Below are positions 37,574-46,660 of a stretch of DNA of 64,000 nt, piece by piece. The notes below the pieces were generated by a model that had not been told where the DNA came from, ran no database searches, and saw only the letters and a program-made list of their open reading frames with translations. The position numbers and the translations under genes are program-made. The stretch lies in the NCBI GenBank assembly GCA_964188305.1, contig OZ076890.1; one strand, 5' to 3'. This stretch comes from Podarcis bocagei (lineage: Eukaryota). Position 1 is the stretch's first letter. Every line of letters starts with the position of its first letter.

Positions 37574-37982
37574 TGTAATGGGATGATTAGCTGCTTGTGC
37601 GTAAAATCGTGCTCCCTCAGAGTTTGTGCGACTCCACAAACCTCTGTGTGTGACAGAGCTCCACAAACATGTCTGCTCTTAGTCACTCGTAGAGTCTGAC
37701 AGTGGCTGTCTGCGGAAGCGTTTCCAGCAAAGAAGCTCCTTAACGGAAACGCGTCTCCTGGACTCACGGCGTGACAGTTTCCGGCGAGGTGTGGGTCTCC
37801 CTATGGGAGACTCAGATACCTCCCCGCTGTTCTCGCTGGAAGCGTCTCTGAGCCCTCCCTCCTGCTCGCATTCCCTCAGAGATCCACTCCTCCCCCTGCT
37901 GGTTCCTGCCTCAGCTGTTGAGTCTCTTTCTTCCTCCCTGAGACCCTCCACCGCCTGATGCTCCGATGGCAGTTCCCTGACA
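37574..37982 (-). repeat. 3' LTR (409 bp)
   Basis: direct repeat of 42637-43045; preceded on the minus strand by the purine tract ...GAGGGGGAGGTGGA. Confidence 0.97.
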
Positions 37983-40900
37983 TCCACCTCCCCTCCAGGG
38001 CCCCCCTCACCCCTTCCCATTTCCTCTTCCCTGGGAGGTGAAGGGTTAAAACCCCGAAAAGAATCTTCTTCATCTTCAGACGTCTCGAACAACTCCCTCC
38101 ATCGATCGCCGTCCTGGCTCGCTGAATCCTCCTCCTCTTCGGAATCTGTGAACCCCTCCAACTCCTCTTCCTCGTCGGTGGTGGCAAAGTATTTCCTTCG
38201 GAACCTCGCTACAGGCTGAGGTTTGCGTGGGAACCTCTGATGAAAAGTTTCTATTAAAAATTCGTCATTGACACCCTCTGCCCTAACCCAGGTGTTTTCC
38301 GACTCCGGTTCCCCTTCCCACATTACCAAATACTCAACTTGATCTCCCTTCCACCTGGAATCGAGGATCTCCGCTACATGGTAGCTGTGTTCCTTCTCCT
38401 CCATTGCTGGTCCCCTAGTGACCCTCCCTTCACTGTCCCCTTTATACGGTGACAGCAATGACCTGTGGAAAACTGGGTGCAGCTTCATGTGGTTCGGTAA
38501 CCGGAGTCTGAAAGCCACTGGGTTGACCTGCTGCATGACTTCAAATGGTCCCAGCCTTTTGGGTCTTAACTTCTTACAACCCCCTTTGAATGGCAACCCT
38601 TGGGTTGACAGCCACACCTGGTCCCCCACCCTGATGCTTTCACCTTCCCTTCTGTTTTTGTCTGCCTGCCTCTTATATTCCTCCTTAGCCCTGTTTAAGT
38701 TGAGTTGGAGCTGGCGATGGATCGCTTCCATTTCTTCAACGAACTGTTCTGCAGCTGGAACGCTCCAGTTCTCCCCTTCCCCCCCTGGGAAGGCTCTGGG
38801 ATGGCACCCGTGATTAGCCAAAAAGGGGCTCATCCCCGTGGACACGTTCTCTGCATTGTTGTAGGCAAATTCTGCCAACGCCAGCTTCTCCACCCAATCA
38901 TTCTCTCTGTCATTCACATAACACCTCAAATATTGCTGGAGAACACCATTAGCTCTTTCCGCCTGCCCGTTGGTTTCTGGATGACGGGCCGTTGAGAAAT
39001 TAACCTCAACATGCAGTAAGCTCATGAGCTTCCTCCAGAACCTGGAAGTAAATTGTTTCCCTCGGTCTGAAACCACCCTCAAGGGGGCGCCATGCAACCT
39101 AAACACATTTTCTACAAACAATTTGGCTGTTTCTTCTGCTGTGACCGCATGTGAGCAGGCTATAAAGTGGGCCATTTTAGTTAACAGGTCTACCACAACC
39201 ATGATGGCTGTTTTCCCTCTAGACCTTGGCAGATCAGTCATAAAATCTATGGCCACTGCTTCCCACGGTCTTTCAGGTGTGGGTAGTGGTTCTAATAAAC
39301 CTGCCGGTGCCCGCCTCTCCCCCTTGGCTCGTTGGCATTGTTCACACCCTCTCACATACTCCCGCACATCTTCCCTGACCTTGGGCCACCAAAATTCCCT
39401 GGTAACCAGCCACATGGTTTTGTGTTGCCCAAAATGCCCTGCTGTGGGGCTATCGTGCAGTTGCTTGAGTACCTTCTCCCTCAATTCCCCTTCGGGTATA
39501 TATAACGCTCCCTTGTAGTACAATGCCCCGTTTCTCTCCTCAAAACCCCCGGGTTTGTCTCCCTCCCTCCTGAGACCCCTGAGTTTGTCCTGGGCGTATT
39601 CATCATGCACCGTACCCTCTACCAACTCCCTTTGCCCCACCAATGCCGCCCCACACACCCAGCGGTCCTCTGGAATGACATGGGTCTCTTCGGGTGCTCC
39701 CTCCCCCTCCAAATATTCAGGTTTGCGTGAGAGAGCGTCCGCCCTAACGTTCTCTGGGCCTGGCACGTAACAAATCTCAAAGTTAAATTTGGAGAACTCC
39801 TGGGCCCATCTCAACTGCCGTTGGTTGAGCACTCGCGCAGTTCTCCAATACTCTAGATTCTTATGGTCCGTGCACACTTGCACCTTATGTTGTGCACCAA
39901 TTAGCAGGTGCCTCCATTTCCGGAAAGCTTCATGAATAGCAAGAAGTTCCCGGTCGTACACCGTGTAGTTCCTCTCGGATTTGTTCAGCTTTCGCGAAAA
40001 GAAGGCACACGGTCGCCACTCTGACTCCTCCTTCCCCGACTGCAGAAGAAGCACCGCCCCTATGGCTCTGTCAGATGCGTCTGTTTCGACCCTCAGCTTC
40101 TTTTGTAAGTCCACATGCAGAAGTTGTTCTTCCGAGGCGAAGGCCCTCTTCAGTTCCTCAAACGCTCGCTCCGCCTCCGCCGTCCATACAAACTTCTTTT
40201 TACTGCTGAGACAGTCCGTAATGGGCGCCGTCAGGTGGGCGAAGTTTCGGATGAACTTACGATAAAAGTTTCCAAACCCTAGGAACCTCTGCACATCCTT
40301 CTTGGTTTTGGGTGTTTTCCAATCCAGCACCGCCTGCACCTTACCGGGATCCATGGCCAATCCCTTGTCTGACAGGCGGTACCCCAGGAATTCCACCTCC
40401 TTGGTATGAAACTGACACTTCTCCAGTTTCACCCACAGCCTGTTGGCTTGCAGCCTGCTCAACACTTCTCTGACGTCTCTCACATGTTGCTCCTCATTCT
40501 CCGAATACACCAACACATCATCTAGGAAGGCAACGCAATTCTTGTAGAGCAAAGGACCCAGTACGTGGTTCATAAAAGATTGAAAGCACGCTGAGCCTGC
40601 TTGTAATCCAAAAGGCATAACGAGATATTCAAATGCCCCCAAAGGGGTAAACATGGTGGTTTTCCATTCATCCCCTTTCCTTATACGTATCAGGTTGTAC
40701 GCCCCCCTTAGATCCAGCTTTGTAAAAATCTTTCCCTTCCTCACCCTGGTCAAAATATCATCAATCCTGGGCATAGGGAAAGTCACTGGTTCAGTCACTG
40801 CATTTAACCTCCTAAAATCACATACAAGTCTCGGCTTGTCCGTGTGCTTTTTATCCACAAAAAACACTGGGCTACCCCCCGCTGCTTTGGACTCTCTGAT

Positions 40901-41581
40901 GAAGCCCCTCTTCAGGTTCTTGTCAATAAATTCTCGCAACTCCTGCATTTCTCTGTCTGACATGGCATACAACTTGCCCACAGGAAGCTGTGCTCCAGGG
41001 AGTAGATTGATCTGGCAATCAAAGGGCCTATGAGGGGGTAGTTGGTCAGCTTCCTTCTCGCTGAACACGTCGCTGAGATCTGCATACTGTGGTGGTACCT
41101 TCACCTTCTCCATTACTTCTGTCCCTGCTAGGGTGGCTTGGGCCCCTGCTGAACCCTTTTCCCCTTTGCAGTGTTCTAAGCAATGTGCTGAACCAAAGGA
41201 AACCACTCTTTGATGCCAGCCCACCAGCGGATCATGTAGCGCTAGCCAGCTCATTCCCAAAATAATGGGAGCGCCTCCCAAGGTGGCCACATTAAACGCT
41301 ATCAGTTCTGTGTGCCTTGCCACCCTCATTATCATTGGGACGGTCTGCAAGCTGACTCCTCCTCCCAACAACTCCCTGCCATCGATCGTGGTCACCTGCA
41401 GGGGGTTGCTTAAAGGGATCGTCTGTATCTGGTGTTCAGCAGCAAACTCCTTGCTCATAAAATTGCAGGAGCTGCCTGAGTCCAACAGCGCCTTTATTTT
41501 TAGGGGGTGTCCATTTTGCAGCTCTAGCGACACATCAATAACTAGAGCAGGTTGAGGAGCTTCTGGCACGGGCACTTTCAC
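37679..41581 (-). CDS. pol: Gypsy Pol polyprotein: protease-RT-RNase H-integrase-chromodomain plus acidic/basic tail (entered by -1 frameshift near 41635)
   Basis: 1300-aa ORF; LLDSGS protease, MPFGL and FLDD RT, ETDAS RNase H, H-x6-H...C-x2-C and DDE integrase, GPF motif, chromodomain ILDSR...YLVMW...ENTW. Confidence 0.96.
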   Translation of the reverse strand: MKVPVPEAPQPALVIDVSLELQNGHPLKIKALLDSGSSCNFMSKEFAAEHQIQTIPLSNPLQVTTIDGRELLGGGVSLQTVPMIMRVARHTELIAFNVATLGGAPIILGMSWLALHDPLVGWHQRVVSFGSAHCLEHCKGEKGSAGAQATLAGTEVMEKVKVPPQYADLSDVFSEKEADQLPPHRPFDCQINLLPGAQLPVGKLYAMSDREMQELREFIDKNLKRGFIRESKAAGGSPVFFVDKKHTDKPRLVCDFRRLNAVTEPVTFPMPRIDDILTRVRKGKIFTKLDLRGAYNLIRIRKGDEWKTTMFTPLGAFEYLVMPFGLQAGSACFQSFMNHVLGPLLYKNCVAFLDDVLVYSENEEQHVRDVREVLSRLQANRLWVKLEKCQFHTKEVEFLGYRLSDKGLAMDPGKVQAVLDWKTPKTKKDVQRFLGFGNFYRKFIRNFAHLTAPITDCLSSKKKFVWTAEAERAFEELKRAFASEEQLLHVDLQKKLRVETDASDRAIGAVLLLQSGKEESEWRPCAFFSRKLNKSERNYTVYDRELLAIHEAFRKWRHLLIGAQHKVQVCTDHKNLEYWRTARVLNQRQLRWAQEFSKFNFEICYVPGPENVRADALSRKPEYLEGEGAPEETHVIPEDRWVCGAALVGQRELVEGTVHDEYAQDKLRGLRREGDKPGGFEERNGALYYKGALYIPEGELREKVLKQLHDSPTAGHFGQHKTMWLVTREFWWPKVREDVREYVRGCEQCQRAKGERRAPAGLLEPLPTPERPWEAVAIDFMTDLPRSRGKTAIMVVVDLLTKMAHFIACSHAVTAEETAKLFVENVFRLHGAPLRVVSDRGKQFTSRFWRKLMSLLHVEVNFSTARHPETNGQAERANGVLQQYLRCYVNDRENDWVEKLALAEFAYNNAENVSTGMSPFLANHGCHPRAFPGGEGENWSVPAAEQFVEEMEAIHRQLQLNLNRAKEEYKRQADKNRREGESIRVGDQVWLSTQGLPFKGGCKKLRPKRLGPFEVMQQVNPVAFRLRLPNHMKLHPVFHRSLLSPYKGDSEGRVTRGPAMEEKEHSYHVAEILDSRWKGDQVEYLVMWEGEPESENTWVRAEGVNDEFLIETFHQRFPRKPQPVARFRRKYFATTDEEEELEGFTDSEEEEDSASQDGDRWRELFETSEDEEDSFRGFNPSPPREEEMGRGEGGPGGEVDVRELPSEHQAVEGLREEERDSTAEAGTSRGRSGSLRECEQEGGLRDASSENSGEVSESPIGRPTPRRKLSRRESRRRVSVKELLCWKRFRRQPLSDSTSD

Positions 41582-41638
41582 TGCTCTTTGGCCTGGCTGC
41601 AGTGCCCCGACTGTGGCAACCAGGCGTTGGCTTTTACC
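41570..41638 (-). promoter_or_regulatory. predicted -1 ribosomal frameshift signal (G_GUA_AAA + pseudoknot)
   Basis: pol is in the -1 frame; heptamer 41632-41638, 6-nt spacer, 10-bp stem 1 and 7-bp stem 2. Confidence 0.72.
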
Positions 41639-42591
41639 TGCTCCGTTTCTCCCTGCTCTCCTCCCTCAACAGCTCCCACCATCCCTTGCCATTCCTTCCT
41701 CTGGGGGCAGACTCTGGCAAAGTGGCCTGGCTGTTGGCAGAGATAGCATTTCCGGGCGCCTTTTCCCTCCTTCTTAACCCCCTCACTGGGTTTTGAAAAT
41801 GCGCGCGCGCGCGCTGTTCCGATTTCCATCGGCTCTGCCGGCGGGAAAGCTGGCTCAGGAATGTCTGGAATGCGGAACTCCTTCCAACGTTCCCCTCTCC
41901 CTTCCCGCCTCTCCAAGGCTCTTGCCTCCTGACGCGCTCCTATGGTCAGCGCAGATTTGGTCAACTGATCCATAGACACCGCCCTGGGGCTCCGGGACAG
42001 CTCGTCTTTCACAGCCGAAGAAAGACCTTCTTCAAATAGCATCTGAATAGGTGCCGCCGATAAATCCCAACCCAGTCTGTGAATCAGCATGGTAAACTCA
42101 GTCCAGTACTCACGGACAGATCGGCTTCCCTGCTTGCAAGCCATTAGCTGTCTGCGCACCACCCCTTCCTCAATATCGCTGGAAAACATGATATCCATTG
42201 CTCTAAAGAACTTCATCGTGTCCTTTAGGACGTCATTGTGCGTTGCCATTAGGGGTCGAACCCAGTCCCGCGCCCCTTTCTCAAGATGCCCAATTACGAA
42301 AGCAACTCGCGATTCCTCATCAGGGAACTCATCGAACTGCACATTAATGGCATATTGCATCTCTGTCCTAAAGGCATGGTAATCCTTGGGGTCCCCCCCA
42401 AACTTCTGCACCAATCCTGGTACCTTTCTGGGGAACTGAGTGGCTCTCCCCTTCTTGTCTGCATCCTGAGCCCTTCTCTCCTCAAGCCTCGCCGTCTGCA
42501 GCGCAAGTTGGACTTCCAACGCTCGGTACCTTTCTTCCAAGCTTGGACCAGCGCCAACTCCTGCTCCTCCGGTTCCGGCTGGTTCGCTCAT
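41578..42591 (-). CDS. gag: Gypsy Gag (capsid + CCHC zinc knuckle)
   Basis: 337-aa ATG ORF in good Kozak context; retrotransposon-gag-like core, EPMEIG motif, CYLCQQPGHFARVC knuckle. Confidence 0.95.
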   Translation of the reverse strand: MSEPAGTGGAGVGAGPSLEERYRALEVQLALQTARLEERRAQDADKKGRATQFPRKVPGLVQKFGGDPKDYHAFRTEMQYAINVQFDEFPDEESRVAFVIGHLEKGARDWVRPLMATHNDVLKDTMKFFRAMDIMFSSDIEEGVVRRQLMACKQGSRSVREYWTEFTMLIHRLGWDLSAAPIQMLFEEGLSSAVKDELSRSPRAVSMDQLTKSALTIGARQEARALERREGRGERWKEFRIPDIPEPAFPPAEPMEIGTARARAFSKPSEGVKKEGKGARKCYLCQQPGHFARVCPQRKEWQGMVGAVEGGEQGETEQVKANAWLPQSGHCSQAKEQ

Positions 42592-42623
42592 GATGCTTTC
42601 TCCTGCACAGGCAGCGTACAGAG

Positions 42624-42634
42624 ACTGTCAGACT
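42624..42634 (-). promoter_or_regulatory. self-priming primer binding site (11 nt, complementary to LTR 42756-42766)
   Basis: no TGG tRNA PBS; AGTCTGACAGT lies 2 nt after the 5' LTR and is the exact complement of ACTGTCAGACT in the LTR. Confidence 0.8.
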
Positions 42635-42636
42635 GC

Positions 42637-43045
42637 TGTAATGGGATGATTAGCTGCTTGTGCGTAAAATCGTGCTCCCTCAGAGTTTGTGCGACTCCAC
42701 AAACCTCTGTGTGTGACAGAGCTCCACAAACATGTCTGCTCTTAGTCACTCGTAGAGTCTGACAGTGGCTGTCTGCGGAAGCGTTTCCAGCAAAGAAGCT
42801 CCTTAACGGAAACGCGTCTCCTGGACTCACGGCGTGACAGTTTCCGGCGAGGTGTGGGTCTCCCTATGGGAGACTCAGATACCTCCCCGCTGTTCTCGCT
42901 GGAAGCGTCTCTGAGCCCTCCCTCCTGCTCGCATTCCCTCAGAGATCCACTCCTCCCCCTGCTGGTTCCTGCCTCAGCTGTTGAGTCTCTTTCTTCCTCC
43001 CTGAGACCCTCCACCGCCTGATGCTCCGATGGCAGTTCCCTGACA
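42637..43045 (-). repeat. 5' LTR (409 bp)
   Basis: direct repeat of 37574-37982, followed by TSD gttca. Confidence 0.97.
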
Positions 43046-45234: not shown

Positions 45235-46136
45235 TTTTTTTTTCCTCTATTATTACTTTTATTTGAAATAAGTGCAGATTACATTCTAAAATACATATAC
45301 ATATATATTACAAGATAAATTCCAACAAGAAAAAAGAAAAAAGAGAAAGAAAAAAGAAAAACCAAAAAAACAAGAAAAAAGAAAAAAGAAAAACACACAG
45401 ATCAAAAACACTAACAAAATAATTAACTTCCGTTCATCTCGGTCTTGGAGTACATAACCTTACATTACTTCTGCAGTAATACTATCATTGACATTGTACA
45501 TCGAGGGCTTTAATTATCGTCTACTGATAAGTTGTTAATTCCCATGTTTATCTCAAAGTAATTTAGAAATTTAATCCATTCATCTTTATGTTTAACTGTG
45601 TTATTTAGCCTTATTTTTTGTGTTAGTCTAGCTAAATCAATATATTGATATAACCTCAGTTGCCACTCACCAATCGTAGGTACGTCAGGGGATTTCCATT
45701 TTTGCGCTATTAAAATCCTCGCCGCGGCCATAGCATATTGAACAAGGGTTTGATCTGTTTTTTTAATTTCCTCACTAATCATCCCTAAGAGAAACAGTTC
45801 AGGAGCTTTGGGAAAATTATACTTCAAAATTTTCTTCAATTCCTCATAAATTTGTCCCCAGAATTCCTTCACTACCTCACAGGTCCACCAAATATGGATA
45901 AAGGTCCCGACCTTGTCTTTGCATCTCCAGCAGCTGTTATCTACATTTTTATACATTTTTCCTAACTTTGCTGGGGTCAGGTACCAGCGGTACATCATTT
46001 TCTCTAGATTTTCACGGAGAGTTGCACACGCTGTAAATTTCATGCCTTTCCTCCAGAGTGTCTGCCATTTATTATATTCAATATTATGTCCGAGGTCTCT
46101 GTCCCATTTTATCATTACTCCCTTCACCAAATCCTC
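45235..46136 (-). mobile_element. 5'-truncated L1-clade LINE (ORF2 C-terminus + 3' UTR)
   Basis: open ORF2 end with CWRC...HIWWTC zinc knuckle (stop at 45510-45512); poly(A) tail; 14-bp TSD tttgctacttggat (45221-45234/46137-46150). Confidence 0.9.
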
Positions 46137-46191
46137 TTTGCTACTTGGATATTTTTTTTTAAGCACCTTAACACAGATGCTATTTTTCTAG

Positions 46192-46523: not shown

Positions 46524-46660
46524 NNNNNNNNNNNNNNNNNNNNNNNNNNNNNNNNNNNNNNNNNNNNNNNNNNNNNNNNNNNNNNNNNNNNNNNNNNNNN
46601 NNNNNNNNNNNNNNNNNNNNNNNNNNNNNNNNNNNNNNNNNNNNNNNNNNNNNNNNNNNN
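46524..46660. other. assembly gap (N run)
   Basis: run of N, flanked on the right by a Sauria SINE remnant. Confidence 0.99.

Follow-up and report, generated by a model that had tools for sequence, protein, structure and literature searches.

Positions 37574-43045 of a 64,000-nucleotide stretch from the lizard Podarcis bocagei (contig OZ076890.1, assembly GCA_964188305.1; the whole stretch is called the window below) are occupied by a complete copy of a Ty3/Gypsy chromovirus on the minus strand, and the tail that ends its integrase carries two tandem peptides resembling those by which cellular proteins dock on LEDGF and HRP2. The element, single within the window, is delimited by direct repeats with TG..CA ends and by an identical flanking pentamer, a 5-bp target-site duplication TGAAC on either side. 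Its long terminal repeats (LTRs) measure 409 bp each and are 100% identical (5´ LTR, 42637-43045; 3´ LTR, 37574-37982). Between them lie gag (41578-42591), encoding 337 amino acids with a CCHC zinc knuckle (Pfam Retrotrans_gag and zf-CCHC), and pol (37679-41581), an open reading frame (ORF) of 1300 codons counted from the first start codon, which specifies protease, reverse transcriptase, RNase H and integrase (H2C2, rve, SH3_Tf2-1), followed by a chromodomain and a tail; all these features are on the minus strand. The chromodomain (amino acids 1067-1116; 38234-38383) matches PF00385 with E 1.2e-10. A purine run abutting the 3´ LTR (37983-38018) forms the polypurine tract and is read in the pol frame as Gly/Glu-rich codons; the frame stays open for about 300 nt into the LTR, to a stop at 37679. 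Since the LTRs are identical, the target duplication is preserved and both gag and pol are open, this is a very young and to all appearance intact copy. LTRs, gag, the protease-reverse transcriptase-RNase H-integrase order and a chromodomain at the integrase C-terminus mark it as a chromovirus; in a quick maximum-likelihood tree it clusters among squamate chromoviruses, and the nearest database proteins are annotated as 'Gypsy retrotransposon integrase-like' from Podarcis muralis (96% identity across the integrase).

An earlier note on this DNA, made from the letters alone, had pointed to a doubled arrangement of helix with terminal Phe, acidic Ser/Thr linker and (F/L)xGF directly after the chromodomain. 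Translation of the minus strand gives exactly the peptide reported there. Motif 1, RFRRKYF-ATTDEEEE-LEGF, covers amino acids 1126-1144 (38150-38206), and motif 2, RWRELF-ETSEDEEDS-FRGF, amino acids 1160-1178 (38048-38104), which places them 10-60 residues C-terminal of the Pfam chromodomain; a variable acidic spacer (amino acids 1145-1159; 38105-38149) separates them. Both lie upstream of the polypurine tract and are thus internal coding sequence, not LTR. One detail has to be corrected, namely that motif 1 reads LxGF here and not FxGF, its relatives having FVGF or MEGF at this place. The linkers are 8 (ATTDEEEE) and 9 (ETSEDEEDS) residues long, inside the 8-16 range of known motifs of this type, and contain conserved S/T-x-x-D/E sites (T1134, T1135, T1167 and S1168) which, judged by sequence, are predicted to be of CK2 type. 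When chromodomain and tail were modelled with AlphaFold2, the tail reached a predicted local confidence (pLDDT) of only 43-58, as against 85-91 for the chromodomain. Such values, along with the abundance of insertions and deletions among relatives, characterise the tail as an intrinsically disordered region. The single tail helix in the model falls exactly over ARFRRKYF (amino acids 1125-1132) and ends at F1132. Each motif thus has an upstream anchor Phe (F1132; F1165, joined by W1161), a helix being predicted for motif 1 alone.

This composition follows the published description of motifs bound by TFIIS N-terminal domains (TNDs), the fold to which the integrase-binding domain (IBD) of LEDGF and HRP2 is related. 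TND-interacting motifs (TIMs) always contain a short helix, which bears a conserved F/V/L/I, and an acidic linker, 8-16 residues long, in which Gly and phosphorylatable Ser/Thr are frequent; FxGF is dispensable in general but present in, and needed by, all known partners of LEDGF and HRP2 (PMC9987994). In LEDGF partners the IBD-binding motif (IBM) is disordered, contains a conserved Phe and has a helical element on its upstream side; human immunodeficiency virus (HIV) integrase, by contrast, presents a pre-arranged folded site (PMC10854676). For the HRP2 partner DPF3a the IBM consensus is S/E-x-F-x-G-F; its HRP2-binding peptide is LFGSTSESDTSTFHGFDEDD, and binding is abolished in F325A and F328A and enhanced by phosphorylation of S323 (PMC7337902). 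Drosophila JIL-1 binds the LEDGF domain of JASPer via DFxGFDE (10.1101/624023), so that the interaction between FxGF and the LEDGF domain is ancient in animals, from flies to humans. The proposed TIM/IBM architecture of the lizard tail fits this published definition, with an upstream anchor Phe (in a predicted helix in motif 1), an acidic Ser/Thr linker of 8-9 residues and (F/L)xGF; at the sequence level the motifs of the window have the listed IBM/TIM traits, FxGF in motif 2 included.

Relatives of the tail were gathered by a word-indexed search of 5.8 billion proteins and by scanning 1.84 billion cluster representatives exhaustively with phmmer, for which the query was the segment from SH3 domain through chromodomain to tail. 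Similar tails proved rare. They comprise three P. muralis clusters, P0001-P0003 (tail identity 69-90%), a protein from a Logan contig, P0121 (65%), one from an ENA contig, P0122 (48%), and a frameshifted fragment, P0128; a search for short tail-only fragments returned none. Six intact tails could be aligned, and identity was calculated between the four diverged sublineages they represent. It amounts to 0.66 in the chromodomain, 0.53 in motif 1, 0.18 in the spacer, 0.55 in motif 2, 0.13 in the stretch after the motifs and 0.76 in the stretch encoded by the polypurine tract, this last value being attributed to constraint at the nucleotide level. Both the spacer and the post-motif stretch also vary in length. 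Within motif 2 the only residues shared by all six tails are W1161, F1165, F1175, G1177 and F1178, that is, the predicted hydrophobic anchors and the glycine, while linker positions swap among D, E, S and T with length kept. Motif 2 ends in FRGF or FLGF in every tail. Motif 1 varies more (LEGF, MEGF, FVGF), with a true FVGF in P0121 and P0128, and is kept throughout this group of relatives (family 1) save in P0122, which retains motif 2 as QWKTVF-ESDENEDTD-FLGF. The anchors are thus conserved relative to their flanks, and the idea of the earlier note survived a comparison it had itself named as able to refute it, with invariant anchors set between a spacer and flanks that evolve fast and with indels, a pattern of protein-level constraint.

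Could the conservation be of another kind? A cis-acting RNA or DNA signal near the polypurine tract, and not the peptide, might be what is preserved, and the adjacent stretch encoded by the tract is indeed conserved for nucleotide reasons. However, the conserved residues carry synonymous codon differences between the window, L001 and L002 (Phe TTC/TTT, Gly GGT/GGG, Arg CGA/AGG), which is why we regard the conservation as acting on protein, and the interchanges of D, E, S and T in the linker involve multi-base changes. On this codon evidence a nucleotide-level explanation is disfavoured and was rejected as extremely improbable.

The tail stretch is also found at high copy number in contigs assembled from public runs of at least nine organisms. 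In contigs of four other organisms, the well-supported differences within the motifs are, among the differences listed (there are 78 more), two synonymous ones together with K1130E and Y1131H, none of them at anchors; these two replacements fall at helix positions that vary in the protein relatives as well. Contigs of two other organisms skip or replace, relative to the window copy, some 94-121 nt over the spacer and motif 2 (joints at 38026-38157). One loose contig end translates as GGSFRGFAS, as in the sublineage of P0002, so the segment put in place of the missing one still bears FRGF. Sequence comparison makes it very probable that both are functional linear motifs maintained by purifying selection.

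A second family of P. muralis proteins (P0007-P0013, P0269 and P0270), with about 52% integrase identity, extends the history of the motif. Its tails read DFFDDWLF, then a linker TPTLSAST of 8 residues, then F[QHR]GF (in 8 of 8 proteins) and [SDA]S[AD]EE. This motif aligns to motif 1 without a gap, as F-x4-F-x8-FxGF, in the same 28-residue register after an FP.[KR]P anchor. The segment LF-TPTLSAST-F[QHR]GF-[SD]S[AD]EE comes close to the DPF3a peptide, with which it shares LF, a Ser/Thr-rich linker and STF[HQ]GFD. In the quick tree, built from 27 Pol proteins, families 1 and 2 form one clade on a long branch (Shimodaira-Hasegawa-like approximate likelihood ratio test support 100), nested in the squamate chromovirus group with support 98; the path from one family to the other is about 1.35 substitutions per site. 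The simplest reading of these sequences is that F-x4-F-linker-FxGF arose once, was retained for long and was later duplicated in tandem in family 1, a duplication which we infer from the mutual resemblance of motifs 1 and 2. In the tails of P0007-P0013 there is, in addition, a second conserved island, rich in Trp, SYWWD[DEN].PEE.W[RS]R[KRE]W, about 45-65 residues past the FP.[KR]P anchor, which has no counterpart in family 1.

Another thought is that the conserved islands serve the element itself, by helping integrase to multimerise, by autoinhibiting the chromodomain or the catalytic core, or in the assembly of particles, with no host tether at all. Disordered integrase tails can play intramolecular roles, and beyond this general point nothing specific speaks for it. 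Tandem motifs joined by a spacer of freely variable length are, on the other hand, typical of independent docking motifs and not of a fixed intramolecular contact, and the point-for-point match to a class of host motifs argues in the same direction. We consider a purely internal role improbable.

Accidental origin was approached by statistics. A pattern defined post hoc, consisting of F, a linker of 7-16 residues (at least 60% D/E/S/T, no K or R) and [FLM]xGF, matches every member of both lizard families and also recognises the published DPF3a IBM peptide; it matches none of the 254 unrelated Pol proteins examined, 205,487 residues in total, from fish, amphibian and metagenome-derived chromoviruses; after the chromodomain, these mostly have a short, basic tail. 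When the composition of the lizard tail was shuffled 200,000 times, at least one match appeared in 0.23% of trials and at least two in 0.001%. Because the pattern was written after the data had been seen, the shuffle and background figures make the significance look greater than it is; they are in line with the evidence from conservation. For chance it can be said that F.GF alone occurs 139 times in the 205,487 background residues, that the tail is compositionally biased and that the pattern is post hoc, so the FxGF strings might be accidents of an acidic low-complexity tail. Yet such accidents would have to yield two matches where shuffling yields them in 1e-5 of trials and 254 background proteins yield none, and their anchors would have to outlast about 1.35 substitutions per site amid flanks remodelled by indels. 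On the shuffle and phylogenetic evidence a chance origin is highly improbable, and this disfavoured candidate was rejected.

We also considered the chromodomain that precedes the motifs. The positions of its aromatic cage were assigned by reference to the HP1 chromodomain. On that basis, the three-residue aromatic cage of a methyl-lysine reader is no longer complete in either family. In family 1 the three positions are occupied by Y/S/N/H, W and E, so that only Trp is kept, plus Tyr in the sublineage of the window; the cage of the window copy is incomplete, with Glu at the third position and a first position that varies among relatives. Family 2 has N, R/E/K and T/F, hence no cage residue kept, and its domain no longer scores as a Pfam chromodomain. 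Sister lizard families, namely Anolis P0014 and P0017, P0015, P0018, Rhineura P0136 and Vipera P0139, keep the full cage (F/Y, W, F/Y) and are without FxGF. In the clade carrying FxGF, loss of the cage thus correlates with the motif, which fits a switch of targeting device as far as sequences can tell. That this squamate clade let its methyl-lysine cage decay and replaced chromodomain targeting by host-mimicking IBMs that hijack LEDGF/HRP2 is a possibility we put forward tentatively.

Three of the cage-intact proteins, P0014 and P0017 of Anolis carolinensis and P0018 of P. muralis, have integrase tails ending in RRSARI or RRSARL, endings which closely resemble the nucleosome-binding core RRSARLSA of HMGN. 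Lizard Gypsy integrase tails may repeatedly acquire chromatin-tethering peptides.

The best single explanation of the conserved tail, to which we give a probability of about 0.5, is that the two peptides are functional short linear motifs in a disordered integrase C-terminus, that they mimic the host IBM/TIM and that integration is steered by their docking on LEDGF/HRP2; partner, phospho-switch and targeting effect are what we infer from the motifs. In this model the conserved Phe of a short amphipathic helix (F1132, F1165) would fill the first hydrophobic pocket of the IBD of LEDGF/HRP2, a domain of five helices. The acidic linker, with its CK2-phosphorylatable Ser/Thr residues, would contact the basic patch of this domain, and both aromatics of (F/L)xGF would occupy a second, shallow pocket. 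Many such tails, displayed on a multimeric intasome, could tether it to LEDGF/HRP2 on nucleosomes bearing H3K36me2/3, and integration would consequently be biased to transcribed gene bodies.

A somewhat unlikely alternative accepts the motifs as real and selected and assigns them to another partner, either a TFIIS-N-domain protein (TFIIS, Elongin A, IWS1, PNUTS, MED26) or an unrelated acidic-aromatic reader, engaged for targeting, nuclear import or transcription. Conservation indicates function and not the identity of the partner, and TIMs in general require only helix and acidic linker (PMC9987994). The acidic helix DFFDDWLF of family 2, moreover, resembles in our own reading generic helices of acidic activation type. 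Against another partner it counts that we know of no other reader of acidic-FxGF. The best-conserved part of the lizard motifs is also precisely FxGF, the element that is specific to LEDGF/HRP2 partners and optional elsewhere (PMC9987994).

Several results weigh against docking on LEDGF/HRP2. The first position of the FxGF of motif 1 is Leu, not Phe, in the window copy, and AlphaFold2 predicts no helix over motif 2 in isolation. FxGF is low in information, the statistical pattern was written after the data were seen, and the correlation with cage loss represents a single evolutionary event. A profile of 14 lizard motif instances gives the DPF3a peptide 10.6 bits, above 1986 of 2000 shuffles; the match is modest, 14 of the 2000 shuffles reaching the same score. 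Run against the PDB with E values up to 10, this profile brought up only chance matches to GldN and no chain with an IBM; such a search is uninformative for an acidic profile of 23 positions and is not support either. A feature search of the ESM Atlas was likewise without usable match. A PDB sequence search with the tail itself gave only a chance match to Rubisco activase (E 0.25).

The element can be compared with several known systems. Host carriers of IBM/TIM motifs (JPO2/CDCA7L, POGZ, MLL1, IWS1, ASK, MED1 and DPF3a; JIL-1 in Drosophila) are alike in disorder, in a conserved upstream Phe (borne by a helix that is predicted in lizard motif 1), in an 8-16 residue linker of acidic residues, Ser and Thr that contains sites of CK2 type, in the lizard tail predicted ones, and in FxGF followed by acidic residues (PMC9987994; PMC7337902; 10.1101/624023). 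These carriers are cellular transcription factors, whereas the putative lizard carrier is the integrase of an autonomous retrotransposon, and in some lizard sublineages the first Phe of the FxGF of motif 1 is replaced by L or M. Two motifs in tandem are found in JPO2 as well. POGZ is of special interest as a DDE-type protein derived from a mobile element which binds LEDGF/HRP2 through an IBM (PMC7337902, PMC8534522); it is, however, a host gene domesticated from a DNA transposon, while the lizard element is young, intact and multi-copy.

The outcome proposed here is that of lentiviruses, whose integrase uses the integrase-binding domain of LEDGF as a tether to the H3K36me3 chromatin of transcribed genes. 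The interaction of integrase with LEDGF is said to be lentivirus-specific, as the title of a 2005 report by Busschots has it. The route differs. In HIV the contact is made by a folded, pre-arranged surface on the catalytic core (PMC10854676), a folded core having also been named in the earlier note, whereas the lizard element would use a linear motif. The integrase of murine leukaemia virus (MLV) docks a short peptide of its disordered tail on the extraterminal domain of BET proteins, which are host chromatin readers, and thereby sets its integration preference (PMC4027182). By analogy, this is the closest mechanistic precedent for tethering by a tail peptide. It differs in motif, in its partners, which read acetyl-lysine at promoters and enhancers, and in MLV being a gammaretrovirus and not a Gypsy element.

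In yeast retrotransposons integration is directed by a small part of the integrase that binds a host factor, as in the pairs Ty1-AC40, Ty3-TFIIIB and Ty5-Sir4 (PMC7459421; 10.1101/2021.07.27.453949). Their partners are RNA polymerase III machinery or heterochromatin proteins, and none of them uses a TND or IBD. The Sir4-binding motif of Ty5 has six residues and is regulated by phosphorylation. Chromodomain targeting of the MAGGY/Tf1 type concerns the same class of elements, the same C-terminal position in the integrase and a chromodomain fold that is present in the lizard element too; in the latter the cage is incomplete (family 1) or lost (family 2), and a linear motif after the domain is conserved instead.

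Where retroviruses and retrotransposons insert is explained by the tethering of their integrases to chromatin readers, and the use of LEDGF has so far been seen as a lentiviral speciality achieved through a folded interface. Host-factor tethering of integrase is of a known kind; the candidate novelty is a LEDGF/HRP2-type motif in the integrase of a retrotransposon. The earlier note knew of no such description for Gypsy elements, and in the full-text literature searched, which leaves most subscription journals outside its coverage, no retrotransposon integrase is reported to carry an IBM/TIM. If docking on LEDGF/HRP2 is real, the same hub would have been captured convergently by a very different route, and tail-peptide mimicry would have its second case after MLV and BET. 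Targeting would have switched from chromodomain to linear motif inside one lineage of elements. With the exchange of cage for IBM, the clade would provide the first case of a retrotransposon, and indeed of any retroelement outside the lentiviruses, on the LEDGF pathway, reached convergently and via linear-motif mimicry, not a folded interface. An insertion bias to gene bodies is then predicted, with consequences for the evolution of lizard genomes, and the motif would supply a compact peptide of natural origin with which integration tools might be retargeted.

A few observations concern the remainder of the element and its surroundings. The pol frame crosses the polypurine tract and about 100 codons of U3 (37679-37982), ending strongly basic (RRKLSRRESRRRVSVKELLCWKRFRR...). 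This LTR-encoded C-terminus is kept near-identical in P0001-P0003 although the tails share just 69-74%, reflecting either nucleotide constraint on the LTR or a genuine basic tail. At the other end of pol, gag terminates at 41578 and the open frame of pol reaches back past its first start codon (41581), which implies that gag-pol is made by frameshifting or overlap in the region 41578-41700. Among nine large ORFs tested in the window outside the element, no host-gene Pfam domain was found, so that the intronic position given for this copy in the earlier note is a putative one. P0011, which NCBI annotates as 'vomeronasal type-2 receptor 26-like' of P. muralis, is a host gene model containing an integrase piece with 73% identity; at least one related copy is therefore within, or merged into, an annotated gene. 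The sole Pfam match outside the element is a weak one to zf-RVT (E 7e-4) in a 218-residue ORF on the minus strand (45510-46166), probably a remnant of a long interspersed nuclear element (LINE) about 2.5 kb from the chromovirus, beside which lies a run of 137 N bases (46524-46660).

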